Positions 5,388 through 64,000 of a stretch of DNA of 64,000 bases are shown here, piece by piece (the first letter of the stretch is position 1; each line of letters begins with the position of its first letter). Position numbers and translations under genes: made by a program. Under the pieces are notes generated by a model. That model worked only from the letters and a program-made list of their open reading frames with translations, did not search any database and was not told the DNA's origin. The stretch covers positions 186,001-250,000 of the IMG/VR virus record IMGVR_UViG_3300035180_001778. The stretch is one strand, 5' to 3'.

Positions 5388-6017
5388 TCAGACCCGCAGG
5401 TCGATCACGAGGAGCGACGAGTTGGCGTCCGGAGCCACCTTCACGATGCCGATCAGGGTCACGAAAGGCAGGCTGTTCTGCCCCGAGACGTTGTACTCGT
5501 AGGCGTCCGCGAGGACGTTGGTGACGAGTCCGTTGACCGAAGCGTAGACCGCATCCCCAGCCGCGTAGACGACCGCGGTCCCGGGAGAGCTGATCTGGGT
5601 CTTCGTCTCGTAGATCGAGAGACCCGCCGTGGTGCCCGAGCCACAGGCGTAGGGCCCACGGTTCGAGGCGACACCAGGGGTGTTCTCGAAGGCGTTCCCG
5701 AGGCTGTCGTTCAGGTAGATGCCCAGCGGCTTGATCTTGGCGTCGTAGGCAGCCGAGACCTTGACAGGCCCACCGTGGAACCCATTGCCGTAGTCGTAGC
5801 GAGTGAAGGCGATGGATCCGCCAAGCACTCCGAGCTTGCTGATGTTCGAGAGGGTGGCGGACTTCTGCGTGGTGACGACGGGGGGATTGGCCTGTGTGAA
5901 CGAATCCGGCGTCAGAACACCCACGGCATTGCGCGTGACGATGTTGAGAAGCTGGACCCGTGACGCGGTCTCCTTGAAGTCACCCGAAGACTGTCCGCCG
6001 ATGGCGAAGGAACTCAT
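5388..6017 (-). CDS. Head decoration/cement-like protein
   Basis: Beta-rich 209 aa directly upstream of the capsid gene; AAGGAG Shine-Dalgarno. Confidence 0.6.
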   Translation of the reverse strand: MSSFAIGGQSSGDFKETASRVQLLNIVTRNAVGVLTPDSFTQANPPVVTTQKSATLSNISKLGVLGGSIAFTRYDYGNGFHGGPVKVSAAYDAKIKPLGIYLNDSLGNAFENTPGVASNRGPYACGSGTTAGLSIYETKTQISSPGTAVVYAAGDAVYASVNGLVTNVLADAYEYNVSGQNSLPFVTLIGIVKVAPDANSSLLVIDLRV

Positions 6018-6113: not shown

Positions 6114-7370
6114 TCACTTCATGTTGAAGGCGTCGCGAACATCGGGAGCCGAGGGCCAGAGGGCCGAGAGCTTGTCGATGTCGTTGCCAGAGCGATTGCC
6201 CGAGCCAGCCACCCCGCCGCCGACCCGCGAGACACCGCCCGTGGGACGAGTCCCGACCGTGCGAGTCGAAGCCGTGCGGCCCATGCCAGCCTGCTTCTGC
6301 TGTTGCGCGCCCTGCTGAGCCTGCTGAGCCTGCTCCGCGTCCTGCGACTCCTGAGTTGCGAAGAGGGTCTTGAGGACGTCGTCCTCCGGACCGAGCTGCA
6401 TCTCCCCGCCATCGCCGAGGTCCATCGGAGGAGCGTCCAGCTCAATGTCCGATTCAGACATGTCGCCGCCGCCCATCCCGCCGCCCATGAGGTCGTCGAG
6501 GAGAGCGTCATCCGACTGCTGTTGCATCGGCATCTGCTGTTGCGAGACCTGCTGCTGTTGCGGCATCTGCTGCGACTGCTGCATCTGGGGCATCTGCTGC
6601 TGAGCCTGTTGCTGCTGCGGCATCTGCTGATCGTTCGCGCGAAGGACACCCGCCTGCTTGAGAGCAGCGGTGACAGCCGCCTGGACAACCTGCATGATGT
6701 CCGGAGACATCGCGGGAGCCTGGGTGGTCTGCGTGGCCGCGGGCGCAGCGACACTGGTCGATGAGGCCCTCGCCATGTCGACAGGAGCCGGCATGGCGAG
6801 GGCCTCATCGAGAGCCAGCTTGGCTCCAGCGAGGTCGCCAGCCTGGAAGGCCTTCTGAGCGCGGAGCTGAAGGGCAGCCTGCTTCTGCTGAGCCTTCTCC
6901 TTGTCCTGATCGTCCTGCGACTGACCCTGCTGAGCGAGACGCTCAGAGAGGCTGGCGTAGGTCGCGATGAGGGCCGCGTCCGGCACATGCATCAGATTGA
7001 CCGCCTGATCCTCGATGGCCAACTCGGGAGCCGTGTTGCCGAGCATCATTCGAGCGAGCTTGACGGTGAAATCTGCCTTCTTCATGTAGAACTTTTCAGA
7101 CGCAGCCGTCTTCTCAGGGTGGTTGTAGGTTTCGGGGCGCTTCTCCGGCATGCCGATCTCGTCACGCTTGGTCTGCCCACCCGAGTACTCCTTCTCCCAC
7201 TCATTGGGGGAGTGAATGTCCTCCGCCCACGAAGACGGATCTCCGTTGGTGTACTTGTCCGCCGAAGGCTGTTGGCTGAGGTGGTCCTGATTCATGGACC
7301 GGGGGTCCTCTGCCGTCCGCGACGACCCCTGCTTGATCTGATCTCGGTTCCAGGTGGTGCGTGTACGCAT
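6114..7370 (-). CDS. Putative scaffolding protein (Gln-rich)
   Basis: Lies between the protease and capsid genes; low-complexity Q/M/P tracts; many KQA/RTA motifs. Confidence 0.6.
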   Translation of the reverse strand: MRTRTTWNRDQIKQGSSRTAEDPRSMNQDHLSQQPSADKYTNGDPSSWAEDIHSPNEWEKEYSGGQTKRDEIGMPEKRPETYNHPEKTAASEKFYMKKADFTVKLARMMLGNTAPELAIEDQAVNLMHVPDAALIATYASLSERLAQQGQSQDDQDKEKAQQKQAALQLRAQKAFQAGDLAGAKLALDEALAMPAPVDMARASSTSVAAPAATQTTQAPAMSPDIMQVVQAAVTAALKQAGVLRANDQQMPQQQQAQQQMPQMQQSQQMPQQQQVSQQQMPMQQQSDDALLDDLMGGGMGGGDMSESDIELDAPPMDLGDGGEMQLGPEDDVLKTLFATQESQDAEQAQQAQQGAQQQKQAGMGRTASTRTVGTRPTGGVSRVGGGVAGSGNRSGNDIDKLSALWPSAPDVRDAFNMK

Positions 7371-11340: not shown

Positions 11341-14310
11341 TCAGCCGAGGTTCTTGATGGTCTGGAGAATCGGCCGGATGTGGGGACGCATCGCCGGGTT
11401 CTTCGTGGCGAAGTCGATGATCGACGCCTTCAGAGCACGGTAGGAGGCAGCCTGCTTCTGCTGTTCCTGACCCTGGTCCTTGTCGTCCTTCTTCTCGTCC
11501 TTCTTGTCGTCCCCCTTGCCCTTCATGTGCTCAAGGAACTGGGGAGGCACCTGTCCACCCTGCTTCTGCTGTTCCTGGGACTGCTGAGCCTTCTCCTGTT
11601 GCTCTTCCTGAGCAACCTTGTCCGCGAGGACGATGAAGTCGTACGCGGCGGAGGGGTTGGTGTATGCCATTTCGGCGGCCTGCTTGCGGATTACGGCGGA
11701 TGCGCTCATGGGTTCTTCTCCTGTAGCAACATAAACGGATCCGTGAGCAGCGGCTTCATGGACCGTCAACAGCGTTTCGTCTTCGGACTTCCCAGCCAAC
11801 CGAGCGAGAAGGGAATTGTACGTCTTGTGGTCGAAACCCGCAGAGTACCTCCCGTCTTCGAGCGTTTGAATGGCGAGGTCAAGAGCGGCCCGTAGCTGGG
11901 TGTCCCGCTCAATTCCCTCCACAGACTTCGACAACACAGGGGCCTTGAGCCACTCCCTTGCCGATTTGAGGACCTTCGTGTAGTCCTTCTCCCCAAGGTC
12001 ACGATCGTGGACTTGATTCCACTTCGTATAGGGGGCGAAGCCCTCATGCCCCTTCGGGTAGGGGGCAACCCCCCAATAGACAGCCTGGCGGTTCTGAGGA
12101 CCCATCGACTTGCACCCTGAATAAGAAGAAAACGAGGCTGTCACCTGGCGATTTTGCTCGTCCCAGAGCCGTTCCCGCTCCTCTTCCTGGTCCTCACCCC
12201 CCAAACCATACCGGACCGGCTTCGCCGGGGGCTCAGGGAGTTCAGGTTCCGGAGGCAGCTCAGGAGCTTCAGGCAAGTCCAGATCCGGCGGAGGCTTCGG
12301 AGCCACGGGGGGCTTCGGCGGTTCCATGCCCTCTGTGGGGGACTCGCGATAGTCCCCCACAGAGGGCATGGCTTCTTGCACGAGCTTCTGGTACTTGACC
12401 TTCTCCTTGACGTACTTTCGGTACTCCTTGTCGAACGCCTTTGCCTGCTCCTTGTACTCGTCGATGGTCCCCTCATGCTTCGAGCGGAGCTTCTCGATGA
12501 TCTTGTCGTGCTTGTCGATGACCTTCTGAACAACCTTCTCGTACCGATCCATGGTCCGCGTCACGAGCTTCTCATGACGGGCAGTCTCAGAATCGAAGAG
12601 CTGGCGCTCGTACTTGTCGACATGGTTCCGAACGAAGGGGTACTTCTCCGGGTTGAGAGTCTGAACATGCTTCAGAATTCGGGTCCGAAATGCCCCCGCC
12701 GGATCCTGAGTAATAGCCGTTGGCGGGTATAGCCGAGAGCGATCCATGAGGAACCGGCTGCCGTCGACCACCCCACGAGCAATGTCCGTAGGCCCCTGAT
12801 GCTCCGAGATGTGCTCAGGAGAGGAGGGGTCTAGAAAACGAGCACGAGCCGTCTGGTAGTCGCGAGCCTGGAAGTAGGAGACCGCAAGACGCTCGGCTGC
12901 CGGGTTGCTCTTCGTGAACTCCAGGACGTTCTTGATCGTCCCGGGGGCGATCTTCTCATCCTTGCCTTCCGTCAGAACCTTCTGGAATACCTTCGCGGCC
13001 AGCTCCTTCGACTGGGCGTTGTCCTTCTCAGGGTCGACCTGCTCGCCTTCCTTCGGCGGCTTCTGCTGTAGAAGGAAGGCAGAGAGGAAGTCGGCCAACG
13101 CCGGGGGAGCCCCCAACGTGCGGGTGAGCGACCGGGTCACCTGGTCATGCGCAGCAAGGCTCAAAGCCACCGTTCGATTTCGGTGTTGAGCCCCAGCTTC
13201 AGCCTGCTCTTCAGGTGAAAGCTCGGTGAACGGGATCTCATTTCCAGCCTGGTCCTTCCCTGTCTTCGGAAGAGGGACCTTCGTGGGATCCGGCTGAAAC
13301 CAATGTTGGGCCTTCCCAACCAGCTTCTCCGCCGCCTTTGCCCCCATGTCACCCGAGCGGGCAGCGTGGTAGGTCGCAAGGATATCCGCCACATCATCCG
13401 GATGGAGGTTCGCATCGAGCAAGCCCTCCCGCATGGCACCGCGGGGAAGGTTTTCGAGAATGGCTGACTTCGCAGCCATTTGCTCCCACTCTTCCGCTTG
13501 ACGCCTCTTCGGCTCAGGGGTCTTGCCCTTTTCCTTCGGAGCCTCTTCAGGGGCCTTCTCAGGCTCTTTCTCGTCTTCCTTGGGCTCCTCGTTGCCCTCA
13601 TCAGGTTCCGGAGGCGTACCAGGGTCTTCCCCCTTCGGAGCCTCGTCAGGGACCTTCTCAGCTTCCGGGGCCTTGGGACTCTCGGGGTCTTTGGGCGCTT
13701 CTTGAGTCTTGGGGGGGTTCTTCTTCCCCTGGTTCAGGACCTTGACGAGCTGCCCAAGCGTCTTGACGCCTTCAGGAAGAGGGCGCCCCCGCATCATGAT
13801 CTCGGCGGGCAGATTGGGAGTGCTCTTCGCCACGTACCCGCCACCTTGCGAGGTCGGGTTGAGCAGGTCCTTGAAGACAGACGCCAGCTCGGGATCCGCC
13901 TTCGAGGCGTCCCATAGCTTCTTGCCCTGTGCGTAGGATTCGTGATCCTCGGGCGCCCATGCCGGTCCCGAGTCCCCCTCTTCGGGCAAGGAGTACTCGT
14001 CGGAGCGTTGCTTCAACGTCTCCGGCTTGATGTAGGTGGTCTCCCCTGTCTCCTTGCGGACAACCTTGACTTTCCCGTTGTCCTTCGCGGCTTCGAGGAA
14101 GCGATCGAGGATACGGCCCCCCAAAGAACCCTTGTAGTTGAGTGACAAGTCCTTGTCGGACTCCTTCAAGTCAGGGTCGGCTTCAGGACGCATGTCTTCC
14201 CGACGACGATCCCGCCGAGGAGGCTTGATCTTCGGGGCGGGACGGACAAGGCGCTCAGCCTCTTCCTCTTCCCGCTCATGCGTATCCTTCGTCGCCCAAT
14301 GCAACATCAC
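11341..14310 (-). CDS. Large multi-segment virion protein with Pro/Glu-rich linkers; possible internal starts
   Basis: 989-aa ORF; the internal ATG at 11709 has an AGGAGA Shine-Dalgarno. Confidence 0.65.
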   Translation of the reverse strand: MMLHWATKDTHEREEEEAERLVRPAPKIKPPRRDRRREDMRPEADPDLKESDKDLSLNYKGSLGGRILDRFLEAAKDNGKVKVVRKETGETTYIKPETLKQRSDEYSLPEEGDSGPAWAPEDHESYAQGKKLWDASKADPELASVFKDLLNPTSQGGGYVAKSTPNLPAEIMMRGRPLPEGVKTLGQLVKVLNQGKKNPPKTQEAPKDPESPKAPEAEKVPDEAPKGEDPGTPPEPDEGNEEPKEDEKEPEKAPEEAPKEKGKTPEPKRRQAEEWEQMAAKSAILENLPRGAMREGLLDANLHPDDVADILATYHAARSGDMGAKAAEKLVGKAQHWFQPDPTKVPLPKTGKDQAGNEIPFTELSPEEQAEAGAQHRNRTVALSLAAHDQVTRSLTRTLGAPPALADFLSAFLLQQKPPKEGEQVDPEKDNAQSKELAAKVFQKVLTEGKDEKIAPGTIKNVLEFTKSNPAAERLAVSYFQARDYQTARARFLDPSSPEHISEHQGPTDIARGVVDGSRFLMDRSRLYPPTAITQDPAGAFRTRILKHVQTLNPEKYPFVRNHVDKYERQLFDSETARHEKLVTRTMDRYEKVVQKVIDKHDKIIEKLRSKHEGTIDEYKEQAKAFDKEYRKYVKEKVKYQKLVQEAMPSVGDYRESPTEGMEPPKPPVAPKPPPDLDLPEAPELPPEPELPEPPAKPVRYGLGGEDQEEERERLWDEQNRQVTASFSSYSGCKSMGPQNRQAVYWGVAPYPKGHEGFAPYTKWNQVHDRDLGEKDYTKVLKSAREWLKAPVLSKSVEGIERDTQLRAALDLAIQTLEDGRYSAGFDHKTYNSLLARLAGKSEDETLLTVHEAAAHGSVYVATGEEPMSASAVIRKQAAEMAYTNPSAAYDFIVLADKVAQEEQQEKAQQSQEQQKQGGQVPPQFLEHMKGKGDDKKDEKKDDKDQGQEQQKQAASYRALKASIIDFATKNPAMRPHIRPILQTIKNLG

Positions 14311-26174: not shown

Positions 26175-26423
26175 GGCTCGGCCTCATCTCTGCGTAAACG
26201 ATAAAAGAAAACACTGATGTTTGCTGGAAAACAGCCGTGTTTCGAGATTTGCTGCCTCAGTGAGGCAAGGTGCCGCGACAAGAGCACCCTTCAGACGAAG
26301 CGAAATACGAAAATGCCAGGCTACCCCGAGACCTCGGGACCTGGCATAGGGTCTGCTTTGAGAAGGGCATGGATCGTGGAGGCGATGTTCCGATGCGTAC
26401 CTTCCGCCCTCTCGGGGGGCTAC

Positions 26424-27134
26424 CTACCCGTCGAGAGCATCGCCTCCACGATCCGCCCACTGAGGGAGCTTCACTTCACGGAGGATGTTGAACTTCTTGT
26501 TCGAGATGGCAGCGAAGACCTTGTGGTAGCGAAGGAAGCGACCATCCTTCCCCGAAGCCTCTCCAAGAAGCTTCACCGCCTTGAAGAACCGATGCCGGAC
26601 TCGACCTTGGGTCAAGCCAAGTCGCATCGCCACTTCGCTCTGACAGGTCGTCGACCACATCCCCACCAGAATGTCCACATCGATAGCCTTGAACGCAGGC
26701 TTGAGATGGCCATCTTGAATGAGGGGAAGGTCCCGCCGAAGCTCGGTCTCAGTGACTTGGGGGATTGACAGGAGGAACTTGATCCTCTGAAGACCTCGAT
26801 CAAGACGATAGGAGATGGCAGCTTGGGTGACGTCGAAGATCTCGGCGATATCCGCCTGACGCTTCTTTTGAATGTAGTAGAGGTAGATGAGATCGGCTTC
26901 CCTTTTGGGGATGCGATCTAGGAGCGGAGCCAGACGATCTTCGTAGTCCCCCGAGTAGAGGAACTCTGCGATGGGGTCGTCATCGTCCTCTTCTTGAATG
27001 AGGCCCGCGGCCGTATCCTCAAGAACCTGGAGACGATCGAGAAGGAGATCCTCCTCCTCGTTCCCTCGACCAGAAGGAAAGCGGTTGGCCAAAGTAGCCG
27101 GGTCTACCGAAATCACGTATCCAGTCGACATCAT
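26424..27134 (-). CDS. Sigma70 region-4-like transcription factor with two tandem HTH domains
   Basis: LDRIPKREADLIYLYY...QADIAEIFDVTQAAISYRLDRG plus a second QSEVAMRLGLTQGRVRHRF. Confidence 0.75.
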   Translation of the reverse strand: MMSTGYVISVDPATLANRFPSGRGNEEEDLLLDRLQVLEDTAAGLIQEEDDDDPIAEFLYSGDYEDRLAPLLDRIPKREADLIYLYYIQKKRQADIAEIFDVTQAAISYRLDRGLQRIKFLLSIPQVTETELRRDLPLIQDGHLKPAFKAIDVDILVGMWSTTCQSEVAMRLGLTQGRVRHRFFKAVKLLGEASGKDGRFLRYHKVFAAISNKKFNILREVKLPQWADRGGDALDG

Positions 27135-56399: not shown

Positions 56400-56623
56400 C
56401 TACTTCCAACGTCCGCGTTTTTCGCGAGGCACAGGCCAGAGTCCTTGTGCCTCCAAAACAGAACGAAGCTCCAAGATCCGGATCTTGGAGCTTCGTCTCC
56501 AACGTCGAAGTGACCAGCGTAGCTTCAGAGCTAGACGATGCGCTCGTGACTTCCCAATCGACAGAGCCCACTCGGCTTCGTGCTCTTTTGAGACTGCCCG
56601 AGATTTACGACTGGGGGTCATTT

Positions 56624-57444: not shown

Positions 57445-58026
57445 TCAAGGGTTTGTAGACGGAATCTCGATGTAGCCCCGGAAGGTAAGAGAGATCCTCT
57501 CACCACACTGCACGGGGCTCTTGGGGATCCTGTGCATGTGCGTGTTCTGCATCCCGGGGGCCATGAGGGCGAGGGACCCGTGCTGGAGCTTCAGCCGCTC
57601 GGGATCGAGCTGAACCGGAAGCTCAGGGCGAGCTTCCATGATCTGCTTGAACCAAATCTCGCGCTCGAATACAAGCGACACGATCCCGATGGGACGGGCG
57701 TCGTCCATCTCGGGCGAGTCATCGGCGTGCCACCCAAGCTGGTCCTTCTGATCCAGGTAGCGGTTGAGGAAGCAGACCTCGAAGGTCGCCCCCGTGAGCG
57801 CTTCGAGGTCCTTCCTGATCTCCCGGATGACGGGATGGTACGGACGAGGCTCGTACAGCCGGCGTCCCTTGCCCCGTCCGTAGACGTAGGGGGTCGGGGT
57901 GTCGTTGCAGTAGTACTCGCACCTGGGAGCGTCACCACGGCGCTCCCAGTCCAGATCATTCCGAAGAGCCGCGAACGCCTTGTCAGGGTCCGAGACGAAC
58001 TTGTAGGTGACGGGGGCCTTTTCCAT
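57445..58026 (-). CDS. AlkB-family 2OG-Fe(II) dioxygenase
   Basis: LNRY, GWHAD, H and RISLTFR motifs. Confidence 0.88.
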   Translation of the reverse strand: MEKAPVTYKFVSDPDKAFAALRNDLDWERRGDAPRCEYYCNDTPTPYVYGRGKGRRLYEPRPYHPVIREIRKDLEALTGATFEVCFLNRYLDQKDQLGWHADDSPEMDDARPIGIVSLVFEREIWFKQIMEARPELPVQLDPERLKLQHGSLALMAPGMQNTHMHRIPKSPVQCGERISLTFRGYIEIPSTNP

Positions 58027-58044: not shown

Positions 58045-58224
58045 AGCGCTCCCCTTTGGGAGGGAGCTTGGACTCGGCGTTTGGGGGTCGTGGCGAGGTG
58101 AAGCGCGAGATCCCCATCCTATGGTCGGGCGGAGAATCCTGTTCGAGGCCTTCCGCGCGACACCGACCGGGGTTCCTGGTTGAGGACTCCCGGCTGTCCA
58201 AGCTCCCTTCCAGAAGGGAGCGCT
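58045..58224 (-). ncRNA. Structured ncRNA A: 180-nt rod with 29-nt closing stem (6S-like shape)
   Basis: 58045-58073 pairs with 58196-58224 (26/29 Watson-Crick); nested inner helices; own promoter. Confidence 0.6.
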
Positions 58225-58232
58225 GTGATCAT

Positions 58233-58260
58233 CCTACAGGTTGATGCCGCTGGGGATCAA
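58233..58260 (-). promoter_or_regulatory. Phage promoter TTGATC-N16-TGTAGG (ncRNA A)
   Basis: Exact motif, ending a few nt before the 5' end of the closing stem. Confidence 0.7.
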
Positions 58261-58264
58261 CCCG

Positions 58265-58545
58265 TTCGTTCGTATTCTGAGAAGAGTCCCCGAACAACCC
58301 CTTGGGACCAGCCTCAAGGCTGTTCGGGACACCGGGATCTCACCCCCAATGCTCTCTTGCCACGTTTTTCCGTCAGAACACCTGGTCGCGTCCTTGCGGC
58401 ACTCTTCGGAAGTCAGCTCGGTTTACGCCGAGCTGCTCCTCTCCGTGGGGACTGCCTTGTATGGCTCCCATCCCCATTCGAGAGCATTTCATGCTGACCG
58501 TGGGGTTTCCACAGTCGAGAGGACTCTTCTCAGAATACGAACGAA
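58265..58545 (-). ncRNA. Structured ncRNA B: multi-hairpin domain closed by a perfect 25-bp stem
   Basis: 58265-58289 is the exact reverse complement of 58521-58545; several hairpins with GNRA-like loops inside. Confidence 0.6.
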
Positions 58546-58547
58546 AC

Positions 58548-58626
58548 AACCAAGGGCGGATTCGAACCGCCTACCAATGGCGACCCTTTTGGAGAGTGCC
58601 CACCGCACCATGCGATGTCCTTGGTT
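58548..58626 (-). ncRNA. Atypical tRNA-like RNA, identity unclear
   Basis: Acceptor AACCAAG/CUUGGUU, perfect T-arm GGCGG-UUCGAAU-CCGCC, long D-stem, irregular anticodon arm. Confidence 0.55.
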
Positions 58627-58632
58627 AAAAAA

Positions 58633-58695: not shown

Positions 58696-58829
58696 CGGGG
58701 TGCCCGATACCAACGGACAGATGGGACTCGAACCCACCTCGACCCCTACTCTAAGAAGTCCGAACACGTTGGAAATTCACAGGTCTGCTTTCCACCGCAG
58801 AGCAAGCTTTAATCGTGTTCAGTCTTCGG

Positions 58830-58914
58830 TCGCAAGCCAGGGAGTCGAACCCCGCTTCACATCGATCACCTTGGAAGGCTGGCCGCCCGGCCACTTTTCG
58901 TCGATGCCCTGCGA
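58830..58914 (-). ncRNA. tRNA-like RNA with acceptor-like stem, T-arm and branched arm, lacking a D-arm
   Basis: UCGCAGG/CUUGCGA closing stem and CGGGG-UUCGACU-CCCUG arm; begins right after a promoter motif. Confidence 0.5.
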
Positions 58915-58921
58915 TGAGGGT

Positions 58922-58949
58922 CCTACAACGGGAGGACCTGCCCGATCAA
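58922..58949 (-). promoter_or_regulatory. Phage promoter TTGATC-N16-TGTAGG
   Basis: Exact motif and spacing. Confidence 0.7.
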
Positions 58950-58961
58950 CCTCAAAGACTT

Positions 58962-59348
58962 CTGAATAGTCGATCTGTGTGGCCGCTCAGGTGCAATCAC
59001 GGTAGTCATGTACCGGAGGATTGCCGATCCCGCCGCCTGGGTCTTCGGTCCGGGGGTGCCAGTTCGCCCTCTACGCTGGCACCCTTGTCCTTCCACACAG
59101 AATCAGAAACCTCAAGTCAGACCTACGTGGTCTTGACGTTGGCCGTTCCGGTGAGTCATGTCACCGAGGCTGCTCCCGCGTTGGCGTTGGGGTCTTGGGT
59201 CAGTGTTGGCGTCGAGTATCTTACCCACCTTGGAGGCATGGGTACCTTCTGAGCGCGCTTCTGACTTGTCCCTGCCACGCAGGCCTGACTTGAGGCGTCG
59301 TACTATTCAGTTGTCAATGACCGAGTCGGCTTTCGTTCTCCGTCTCGT
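58962..59348 (-). ncRNA. Structured ncRNA C (about 390 nt)
   Basis: 21-bp helix 59110-59130/59275-59295 with two G-U pairs on the minus strand; closing helix 58962-58970/59302-59310; twin CAUGAC-loop hairpins. Confidence 0.6.
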
Positions 59349-59382: not shown

Positions 59383-59402
59383 CCTCGGGGTGTTTTTTCT
59401 TG

Positions 59403-59551
59403 AGGTTCGGGTTGAGCAGAGCACAACCTTCGTGCTGACTCGAACAGCCACACCCAACCTTGGGATACCGGACTCGAACCGGAATACAGAGGCTTATGCT
59501 GCCCCTGTGAGATACCCTTCTCTCCAGTTGTGCTCTGCTCAACCCGAACCT
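59403..59551 (-). ncRNA. Structured ncRNA D: perfect 25-bp stem enclosing tRNA-like arms
   Basis: 59403-59427 is the exact reverse complement of 59527-59551; two UUCGAGU T-loops inside. Confidence 0.6.
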
Positions 59552-62964: not shown

Positions 62965-63525
62965 TCAGCCCGAGGCCTGGTTCTGCTGGAACCCCACGAG
63001 GAAGGGTTCCCAGAGGTCCGACTTGACGTCATGCCGGATCTGGGGAGCCCCCAACGGCAGAGTCTTCGGAGCGTGCGGATGCGCGATGCCCTTCCACGTT
63101 GCCGGGGGCTTGAGCCTCATGCCCGCTTCTGCCGGCGTGCGACCAGCCTTGCGGCCGTTGCACGGGTAGCAGCTCGTCACGATGTTCTCCCACACCGTCT
63201 TCCCACCCTGGCGCCTCGGAACCACATGGTCGTAGTTCAGGTCCTTCCGCGACTTGGTGGTGCCGCAGTAGCAGCACATGAAGTTGTCGCGAGCGAAGAC
63301 GTTCTCCCGTGAGAACTTGACGCCCCGCTTGCGATACGGGACGACCTTCTTGAGCATGGCGACCGCGGGCATCTTGACGACCTGCCCATCACGCTCGCAG
63401 AGGACCTCGTCGTACTCTTCCAGGATTTGGATTTTGCCGTTGCAGAAGTCGACCATTGCGACCTGCCACGGCACGACTCTGTGTGGGGCCATCCACGAGT
63501 TCAAGATCAGCGTATGCGAGTTCAT
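62965..63525 (-). CDS. HNH endonuclease (McrA-like)
   Basis: Start MNSH at 63525; FSRENVFARDNFMCCYCG, DHVVP and WENIVTSCYPCN motifs. Confidence 0.88.
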   Translation of the reverse strand: MNSHTLILNSWMAPHRVVPWQVAMVDFCNGKIQILEEYDEVLCERDGQVVKMPAVAMLKKVVPYRKRGVKFSRENVFARDNFMCCYCGTTKSRKDLNYDHVVPRRQGGKTVWENIVTSCYPCNGRKAGRTPAEAGMRLKPPATWKGIAHPHAPKTLPLGAPQIRHDVKSDLWEPFLVGFQQNQASG

Positions 63526-63577
63526 GGGACACCTTCGTGATGCGCCCCAACTTGGAGCGGCTACCGTTTCAATTGCA

Positions 63578-63654
63578 TGGTGCCCGCCGGGGGATTCGAA
63601 CCCCCAACCTTCCGTTTTTGAGGCGGACGCCGCTGCCAGTTGGGCTAGACGGGC
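63578..63654 (-). tRNA. tRNA-Leu(CAA) with short variable loop
   Basis: Acceptor GCCCGUC/GGCGGGC, A73, CCA, loop CUCAAAA, 5-nt variable region. Confidence 0.75.
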
Positions 63655-63708
63655 ATAATACAGGAAGGCCCTGGTTGCGATCAACCAAGGCCTTCCAATT
63701 CGAGAATT

Positions 63709-64000
63709 TGGAGCTGCCGGGAATCGAACCCGGGTCCGCAAAGCTTCCGTTCCGCTTTCGTTTACGTGCGTAGCCGCCATATCCCTGGCGGCTGGGTTCG
63801 CGGATTTGGCCGCGAACTATCTCGTCTGCTTGTCTCGAAGGGGTAGCCGCCGAGCACGCTTCCCCTTCCAGCCCTGTGGGTTGACACCGGAAATCCAGCT
63901 ACTAGGACGATCTTGCTGGCCGATGGTCACTACGCAGCCATCTGCATGGGGACGAGAGCGTTGTCGTTCGCAGGTATACGTCTCGATTGATTACGGCGGG
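63709..64000 (-). ncRNA. ssrA: tmRNA (5' end outside the window); tag ANDNALVPMQMAA
   Basis: 3' end GCGGACCCGGGUUCGAUUCCCGGCAGCUCCA; tag ORF 63971-63930 ends in AA followed by stop. Confidence 0.9.

Follow-up and report, generated by a model that had tools for sequence, protein, structure and literature searches.

A probable ~281-nt structured RNA with a long terminal helix at the tail of a jumbo-phage tRNA array

The clamped element at positions 58265-58545 of the window (the whole 64,000-nt stretch of DNA that was analysed, bases 186,001-250,000 of the 350,469-bp IMG/VR virus record IMGVR_UViG_3300035180_001778) is interpreted, with a probability of roughly 0.6, as the gene for a structured non-coding RNA of ~281 nt that sits at the tail of a jumbo-phage tRNA array, is released through tRNA punctuation, and has its two ends sealed by a long helix. 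Comparison of aligned sequences indicates that the element is a member of a real RNA family that is absent from Rfam and for which three members have been found so far. The conserved core is made up of a 24-26-bp terminal helix, a multi-way junction, and five or six hairpins whose loops are conserved; two of these loops probably contact each other. The RNA belongs to a known kind, the ornate phage RNAs encoded near tRNAs, and within it represents a new and narrowly distributed family with an architecture of its own. The idea at the core of the sequence-only reading, an ornate RNA domain closed by a long helix, now has comparative support from homologs, compensatory changes, and RNAalifold.

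The source of the record is an uncultured jumbo (giant) phage with ~59% G+C, and the record is 73% complete (CheckV). An identical phage (100% over 7.5 kb) occurs in a second IMG/VR record and in four DNA runs from sediment/microbial-mat samples; the four runs that hold the element sequence are all DNA metagenomes and were kept as contigs. The majority of the genes of the record lie on the minus strand, as does one array (242.6-265.7 kb of the record) that contains 40 tRNA genes and a tmRNA (ARAGORN), and the clamped element is located at the downstream end of this array. Genes near the element encode an HNH endonuclease, a DEDDh-type (Rv2179c-like) 3'-5' exoribonuclease, an R2K ATP-grasp protein, a GroEL-type chaperonin, and an AlkB-like 2OG-Fe(II) dioxygenase (58026 to 57445 on the minus strand, with the ATG at 58026). 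An ORF with an HNH domain (62965-63780, minus strand) lies within the tRNA array beside tRNA-Leu and the tmRNA, where the relatives have one or two HNH genes. Genes for AlkB-like dioxygenases are recurrent in or beside the tRNA arrays of phages (loci L040, L044, L045, L048, L086, and L054). In the more distant phage L054, the AlkB gene is found near genes for a Ro60-like/vWA protein, an RNA ligase, and a NUDIX protein, a set that suggests an RNA repair module.

The exact inverted repeat described in the sequence-only reading was recovered: its arms, 58265-58289 and 58521-58545, are 25 nt long, 100% complementary, and separated by an interior of 231 nt. On the minus strand, the 5' arm of this clamp (P1; UUCGUUCGUAUUCUGAGAAGAGUCC, 58521..58545) and the 3' arm (58265..58289) have a pair probability of about 1.0 and covary among relatives, and the 3' arm ends 2 nt before a GGTTGATC box at 58262. 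A scan of the whole record returned only two perfect repeats of 25 bp, this pair and 59403-59427/59527-59551 (99-nt spacer), which are tied as the longest perfect inverted repeats of the record and lie ~860 nt apart; the other perfect repeats of at least 15 bp are plain hairpins with spacers of at most 14 nt, save two with spacers of ~50 nt. By our own estimate, about 2e-7 perfect 25-bp repeats within 700 nt would be expected by chance in 350 kb. The repeat and the element it encloses are single-copy in the 350,469-bp record, the ORFs that overlap the element have neither Pfam nor PHROG support, and no sigma-70-like promoter was found inside it. Across the record there are also ~20 long perfect hairpins with stems of 17-24 bp and loops of 0-14 nt, mostly without a U tract; examples in the window are 6758-6811, 12324-12371, 26371-26454, and 56463-56496, and some seemingly fall inside long ORFs. 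These hairpins may be a processing or termination signal of the phage.

Folding of the whole unit yielded -150.8 kcal/mol (z -9.0) for the minus strand and -137.6 for the plus strand, and the 231-nt interior without the clamp still had a z of -4.9 (minus strand) and -3.5 (plus strand). The genome background, derived from 70 random segments of 231 nt, has a mean z of -0.89 (sd 1.26) and a minimum of -3.5. The sole polymorphism in 2.6 kb over the four runs, 58418 T>C in plus-strand letters (run X3), converts a U-A pair to U-G in the minus-strand RNA and would create an A-C mismatch on the plus strand. Based on the better fold, the presence of G-U among 12 of the 75 interior pairs, and a SNP that pairs on the minus strand alone, the element is modelled as a minus-strand RNA of about 281 nt that runs from 58545 to 58265.

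The predicted components of the RNA are given here in 5' to 3' order on the minus strand. Behind the 5' arm of the clamp, the minimum free energy structure contains a hairpin, GACUGUGG-AAACC-CCACGGUC (58496..58516), with compensatory changes in four of eight pairs and a loop that is nearly conserved, reading AAACC in the window and L048 but AACCU in L086, and then the small hairpin GCAU-GAA-AUGC (58484..58494), the weakest conserved helix, with 80% of its cells paired. The variable hairpin of 44 nt that follows (58440..58483) has no counterpart in L048 and almost none in L086 on the model alignment, and is an insertion (58483 to 58440) peculiar to the copy in the window. The next hairpin, GGAG-CAGCUCGG-CGUAAA-CCGAGCUG-A-CUUC (58409..58439), holds the SNP at 58418 and has compensatory changes in 8 of 12 pairs, while those in the hairpin AGGACGC-GACCAG-GUGUUCU (58375..58394) affect three of seven; the loop of the latter presents ACCAG (58386 to 58382), of which CCAG is invariant. 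A hairpin with a GUGAGA loop, CAUUGGGG-GUGAGA-UCCCGGUG (58330..58351), leads to the conserved junction GUGUCC and to the long hairpin CCCGAACAGCCUU...GGGGUUGUUCGGG (58289..58328), which carries CUGGU at 58311 to 58307 in its invariant GCUGG loop. The sequence-only reading had placed a long hairpin, CCCGAACAGCC...GGGGUUGUUCGGG, next to the 3' arm, and this hairpin is real, though only in the minus-strand reading (58328 to 58289). Its description of interior loops of GAAA/GUAA/GCAA/GAGA type was only partly right: the predicted loops (AAACC, GAA, AUACAA, CGUAAA, GACCAG, GUGAGA, and CUGGUC) are mostly hexaloops and not GNRA tetraloops.

Homologs were sought with a covariance model built from the element alone and then with a two-sequence model (R2; window and L048), and the closer relatives were obtained through an AlkB protein search of a large protein collection, after which their contigs were examined. 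The single-sequence model matched L048:4883-5115, on a 228-kb contig of an NCBI metagenome assembly (46 bits, E 8e-13), and R2 matched L086:6519-6759 on a JGI contig (119 bits, E 3e-35). Both loci are syntenic with the window, with the tmRNA, tRNA-Leu, and HNH genes followed by the RNA, AlkB, and the chaperonin. The RNA of the window and that of L048 are 51% identical over 226 aligned columns, and L048 alone folds into the same architecture of a 26-bp clamp and a multi-hairpin junction (z -6.9). In the three-sequence alignment, both sides have changed in 39 of 111 pairs and standard pairs occupy 96.3% of the cells, counts that should be read with the caveat that only three sequences are compared, two of them close to each other, and that the alignment was fitted to the model structure, which favours that structure. 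None of 500 shuffles attained these values, and sliding the partners by 1-3 columns left 1-6 such pairs and 35-50% pairing. RNAalifold, which derives its own structure from the same alignment, kept the clamp and five hairpins with 35 compensatory pairs. Thus, homologs exist and their helices are maintained by compensatory substitutions, as is expected of a conserved structured RNA.

The clamp is part of this pattern. Both sides have changed in 13 of its 27 aligned pairs, the relatives have one or two G-U pairs within it, and its length varies between 24 and 26 bp. Because the clamp covaries and contains G-U pairs in the relatives, it is best viewed as a helix at the level of RNA and not as a palindrome at the level of DNA. 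In the copy of the window, none of the 25 clamp pairs is G-U, compared to 12 of 75 (16%) in the interior (P about 0.013 for 25 pairs), and the all-Watson-Crick clamp is a trait of this copy and not of the family. It nonetheless counts against a model at the RNA level only, which does not require such a clamp.

Two hairpin-loop motifs, G(A/U)CCAG and GCUGG(U/A), are invariant in the three homologs and mutually complementary, with ACCAG facing CUGGU in the window and UCCAG facing CUGGA in L048 and L086. Five pairs are possible in all three sequences, with the outer pair swapped from A-U to U-A. This complementarity suggests a kissing-loop contact between the ACCAG and CUGGU loops, which could form within one molecule or between molecules.

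The placement of the RNA in a transcription unit is predicted from a recurrent motif. A shared-word search of the non-coding island found GGTTGATC just after three clamped domains, and the pattern GTTGATC-N14-18-TGTA occurs in 89 copies in the genome (56 minus-strand and 33 plus-strand), where about 0.2 would be expected by chance (our own estimate). Of the minus-strand copies, 54 of 56 have a 16-nt spacer, as do all the plus-strand copies listed, and in most copies an ATG follows 8 nt after TGTA, giving the form GGTTGATC-N16-TGTA(GGA). Minus-strand examples in the window are found at 63686, 60216, 59384, 58951, 58262, 53789, and 53528; the motif is also present in the relatives L044, L045, L048, and L086, and it heads tRNA and non-coding RNA units as well. 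Judged by this arrangement, GGTTGATC-N16-TGTA looks like the phage's own promoter for leaderless or near-leaderless genes. The GGTTGATC box may be read by the product of the gene at 26424-27134 (minus strand), which has a sigma-70 region 4 domain. A search of the literature returned nothing specific on comparable phage RNAs or on the promoter motif.

All predicted starts assume initiation where the A of the ATG usually lies. On this basis, the unit that contains the element is headed by the promoter-like motif at 58924..58951 (minus strand), with a predicted start at A58915, and comprises, in order, a tRNA-like element, a hairpin domain, a weak tRNA-Thr-like sequence (58744 to 58662), tRNA-Trp, and the clamp. 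The tRNA-like element (86 nt, 58829..58914, minus strand) starts 1 nt past A58915 and has a 7-bp acceptor stem (UCGCAGG/CUUGCGA), a T arm, and a C as discriminator, with the D and anticodon arms replaced by one long composite arm; elements of 86-88 nt of this kind occur in all five loci (window, L044, L045, L048, and L086) and received no ARAGORN call. The tRNA-Trp (CCA) at 58546..58627 (minus strand; ARAGORN, with 40.6 bits to the Rfam tRNA clan) has a long variable region and lacks an encoded CCA end; its discriminator lies at 58547, and the clamp starts after 1 nt. In L086, nothing separates the clamp from the discriminator of the tRNA-like element before it, so that the clamp follows a discriminator by 0-1 nt in two of the three members. 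In L048, ~190 nt lie between the RNA and the preceding tRNA, and the abutment is not universal. The tRNA-Trp(CCA), the sole one of the phage, is atypical in its 12-nt variable region and mismatched anticodon stem, and ARAGORN reads its counterpart at L048:4610-4691 with a four-base anticodon (tcca).

Combined, these features are consistent with a model in which the GGTTGATC-N16-TGTA promoter at 58951, the phage's own, would drive a co-transcript that has the RNA as its final module, behind the tRNA-like element, the hairpin domain, the tRNA-Thr-like sequence, and tRNA-Trp. The 5' end would be generated by an RNase Z-type cut after the discriminator of the CCA-less tRNA-Trp, and the 3' end may be trimmed back to the helix, perhaps with the help of the DEDDh exoribonuclease of the phage. 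By pairing both ends, the helix of 24-26 bp would shield the released RNA from exonucleases, and it may additionally be a site for RNase III. The involvement of tRNA-processing nucleases, for at least the 5' cut, is suggested because the helix abuts tRNA or tRNA-like 3' ends in the window and L086, where the same juxtaposition is reached in two different arrangements; the distance of ~190 nt in L048 weakens the argument for tRNA punctuation. In MALAT1/mascRNA and in bacterial RNAs from 3' external transcribed spacers, such as 3'ETS-leuZ, the end of an RNA is set by the processing of an adjoining tRNA or tRNA-like structure. The likeness lies in the position of the clamp directly behind a discriminator in two members, and it ends there: MALAT1/mascRNA and 3'ETS-leuZ belong to another domain and organism and have no sequence relation to the element, and the RNA of L048 does not abut a tRNA.

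Several other structured domains occur in the same island. The promoter-like motif behind the element (58235..58262, minus strand) has a predicted start at A58226 and precedes the region 58224 to 58045 and the AlkB gene. This region (58045-58224, minus strand) is enclosed by an imperfect clamp of 29 bp (90%) around a 122-nt interior, begins 2 nt past A58226, and ends 19 nt before the AlkB ATG; if transcription starts at A58226, the AlkB mRNA has this region as its structured 5' leader. Conservation in L044 extends to both the promoter and the leader, the latter at 5813-6002 (nhmmer E 7e-51). Upstream of the element, the unit at 58952-59348 (minus strand; predicted start A59348 from the motif at 59384) holds only a structured RNA of ~400 nt (59320 to 58952) with nested clamps at 59320/58952 and 59295/59110 (z -5.8), no tRNA or ORF support, and no nhmmer homolog in L044, L045, L048, or L086. 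The second perfect 25-bp clamp (59403-59551, minus strand) starts 1-3 nt past tRNA-Ser(GGA) and encloses 99 nt of cloverleaf-like hairpins, including a T-arm-like CCGG-UUCGAGU-CCGG. It has no Rfam match, and its homolog at L044:4989-5146 has a perfect 30-bp clamp of altered sequence, which indicates that both arms changed together.

The distribution of the RNA is narrow. A blastn search of the region against 50,697 phage records gave no match, an nhmmer search with the element and the neighbouring domains found nothing in 29 loci of relatives picked by the exonuclease gene, and 23 related jumbo-phage records yielded no hit to the single-sequence model (R1). The element is absent from the relatives retrieved via AlkB in IMG/VR, and those retrieved in the same way from JGI metagenome contigs are too distant to have it. 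The R2 model returned nothing from 33 IMG/VR jumbo-phage records (20 of them complete), 46 other loci, and 85 loose-pattern loci, and scans for exact patterns (the 3' end of tRNA-Trp, the terminal 20-mer, and two patterns from the conserved core) produced only the same phage or chance matches. A weak R2 match in L151 (Streptomyces, 19.9 bits) was taken as noise, and an analogous long-range repeat in L034 was dismissed, as it lies inside an ORF of 826 codons.

In L044, the closest relative, which shares the gene order and has an 86% identical AlkB, an ORF of 71 codons (5544-5759) with an AAGGAG ribosome-binding site takes the place of the RNA between tRNA-Trp and the AlkB promoter. Remnants of the clamp arms are retained in this slot, with TTTCGTTCGT...AAGGAGTCTCCT on the 5' side and CAGATACAGAACGGGTTGATC on the 3' side. 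In L045 (73% identical), neither the RNA nor the 71-codon ORF is present. As one relative has the ORF and the other has neither, the slot evidently exchanges its content and the RNA is accessory; by this comparison of genomes, it appears to be dispensable or interchangeable. An accessory role is likely given the restriction to three metagenomic phages and the closest relative without the RNA.

Cleavage of the helix by RNase III, an idea raised in tentative form by the sequence-only reading, is a live alternative to the tRNA-punctuated model or a possible extra step. In this case, host RNase III would cut the 25-bp helix and free both the domain and the upstream tRNAs from a read-through transcript, a reading that can be held tentatively. 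RNase III needs roughly two helical turns of duplex, and rRNA operon stalks and the early region of phage T7 are precedents for such cleavage. As in those systems, a long helix is formed from the flanks of a structured RNA in a polycistronic transcript with tRNAs, and the perfect duplex of 25 bp (24-26 bp in relatives) is long enough for the ~20 bp that the enzyme requires. A second perfect 25-bp clamp occurs within the same 1.3 kb, no U tract follows the clamp of the element, and the ~20 long perfect hairpins of the record, mostly free of U tracts, could constitute a general processing signal. Unlike the rRNA stalks, the interior is not rRNA and the helix is the core of the family and not merely a disposable flank, so that a cut inside it would remove half of the longest and most conserved helix of the RNA. 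Further, the conserved feature on the 5' side is a tRNA-like 3' end, which is recognised by other nucleases, and no RNase III gene was found in the 350-kb record (73% complete), though the host would supply one.

An unlikely alternative is that clamp and interior together act as a boundary, i.e., as a terminator, an insulator, or a 3' stabiliser between closely spaced promoters, with no function in trans. The spacing of 2 nt between the 3' arm and the next promoter box fits such a role, as does the fact that promoter motifs (59384 and 58951) lie shortly downstream of the island's other clamped domains. But in L048 and L086 the promoter motif was not found directly behind the RNA, and a simple hairpin would suffice for a boundary, yet the interior of 200 nt covaries and its loops are invariant. 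The 3' arm is followed by CGGGUUGAUCCCC and not by a U tract, and a scan called no terminator-like site there; an intrinsic terminator was rejected, since a G+C-rich hairpin with a U tract is not what is found at the 3' arm.

It is also rather doubtful, if conceivable, that the RNA is a self-assembling particle in which the invariant loops pair between molecules, head to tail, to form a ring or cage with the clamps pointing outward. Such a particle would resemble the assemblies of phi29 pRNA or of GOLLD and ROOL. In phi29 pRNA, a long helix joins the 5' and 3' ends, and the loops are complementary; the present RNA likewise has its ends in a long helix and two complementary loops of 4-5 nt that could pair between molecules, but the Rfam pRNA model does not match it and the phage type, size, and genomic position differ. 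GOLLD and ROOL, roughly 580 and 800 nt in size, resemble it in being phage-borne, typically next to tRNA genes, and rich in hairpins, whereas the present RNA is far smaller (233-281 nt) and dominated by its long terminal clamp. The Rfam models of GOLLD and ROOL gave no match to the element even at E<=10. A preprint on cryo-EM structures of GOLLD and ROOL describes self-assembly via loop contacts (bioRxiv 10.1101/2024.12.08.627333). Should the RNA self-assemble, it would represent a new and much smaller class of oligomeric phage RNA, derived from a tRNA array and used during infection, for example as a scaffold or to soak up a host defence protein that binds RNA.

Readings at the level of DNA, i.e., a MITE-like insertion, an inverton, or a cruciform-forming palindrome, are very improbable. 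They could draw on the perfection of the arms, with no G-U in 25 pairs against 16% in the interior, on the variable slot among relatives (the ORF in L044), and on the HNH endonuclease genes within the array. Against this, the arms of the relatives have diverged through compensatory changes that include G-U pairs, which points to selection at the RNA level. The flanks (...AACCCG and ACAACC...) are without a target-site duplication, the element has a single copy in the genome, and the terminal 20-mer has no other copy in 2.9 million viral contigs or in 185,579 species genomes (one genome per species), so that the possibility of MITE-like termini, which the sequence-only reading had named as a finding that would overturn it, was not borne out. 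No serine or tyrosine recombinase (Resolvase and Phage_integrase domains) was found in the record (73% complete), and the contigs of the four runs hold the element in a single orientation and without joints, although contigs can hide rare variants.

The resemblance to a retron msr-msd RNA closed by a1/a2 repeats, or to a decoy of one, which the sequence-only reading had put forward, is close to refuted, because an inverted repeat around a structured RNA of ~230 nt fits only in outline and is not retron-specific, the lack of a reverse transcriptase in the window extends to the whole 350-kb record (PF00078, RVT_1, which matches in control genomes; 73% complete), none is present among the genes called around the homologs in L048 and L086, and Rfam gave no match at E<=10.

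A search of Rfam 15 gave no match, either at the gathering score or at E<=10 on 321 nt around the element. As for the role of the RNA, a protein-binding or decoy RNA tied to the neighbouring RNA repair and tRNA genes is a guess, for which the only hint is the neighbourhood of the AlkB-like dioxygenase, the R2K ATP-grasp protein, the DEDDh-type exoribonuclease, and the HNH endonucleases. The YrlA Y RNAs that associate with Ro/Rsr are alike in having their ends in a long stem and tRNA-like surroundings; the element differs in that it contains no tRNA-like module and has no Rfam Y RNA match, and the record has no TROVE/Ro gene. Searches of the record found no Ro/TROVE (PF05731), RtcB, RNase III, or reverse transcriptase, absence from a record that is 73% complete not being proof. 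A Ro60-like gene and an RNA ligase do occur in L054, the more distant phage with a related AlkB.

The large tRNA arrays of jumbo phages are rarely examined for what they contain besides tRNAs. Here, one such array was found to terminate in a group of structured RNAs, clamped by helices and apparently promoter-driven, of which at least one is a conserved family without an Rfam match. If expressed and stable, the RNA, at about 230-280 nt, would be a compact addition to the few ornate phage RNAs on record, its size would suit probing, cryo-EM on scaffolds, and pull-downs, and it would provide a test case for the tRNA-punctuated release of non-coding RNAs in phages.
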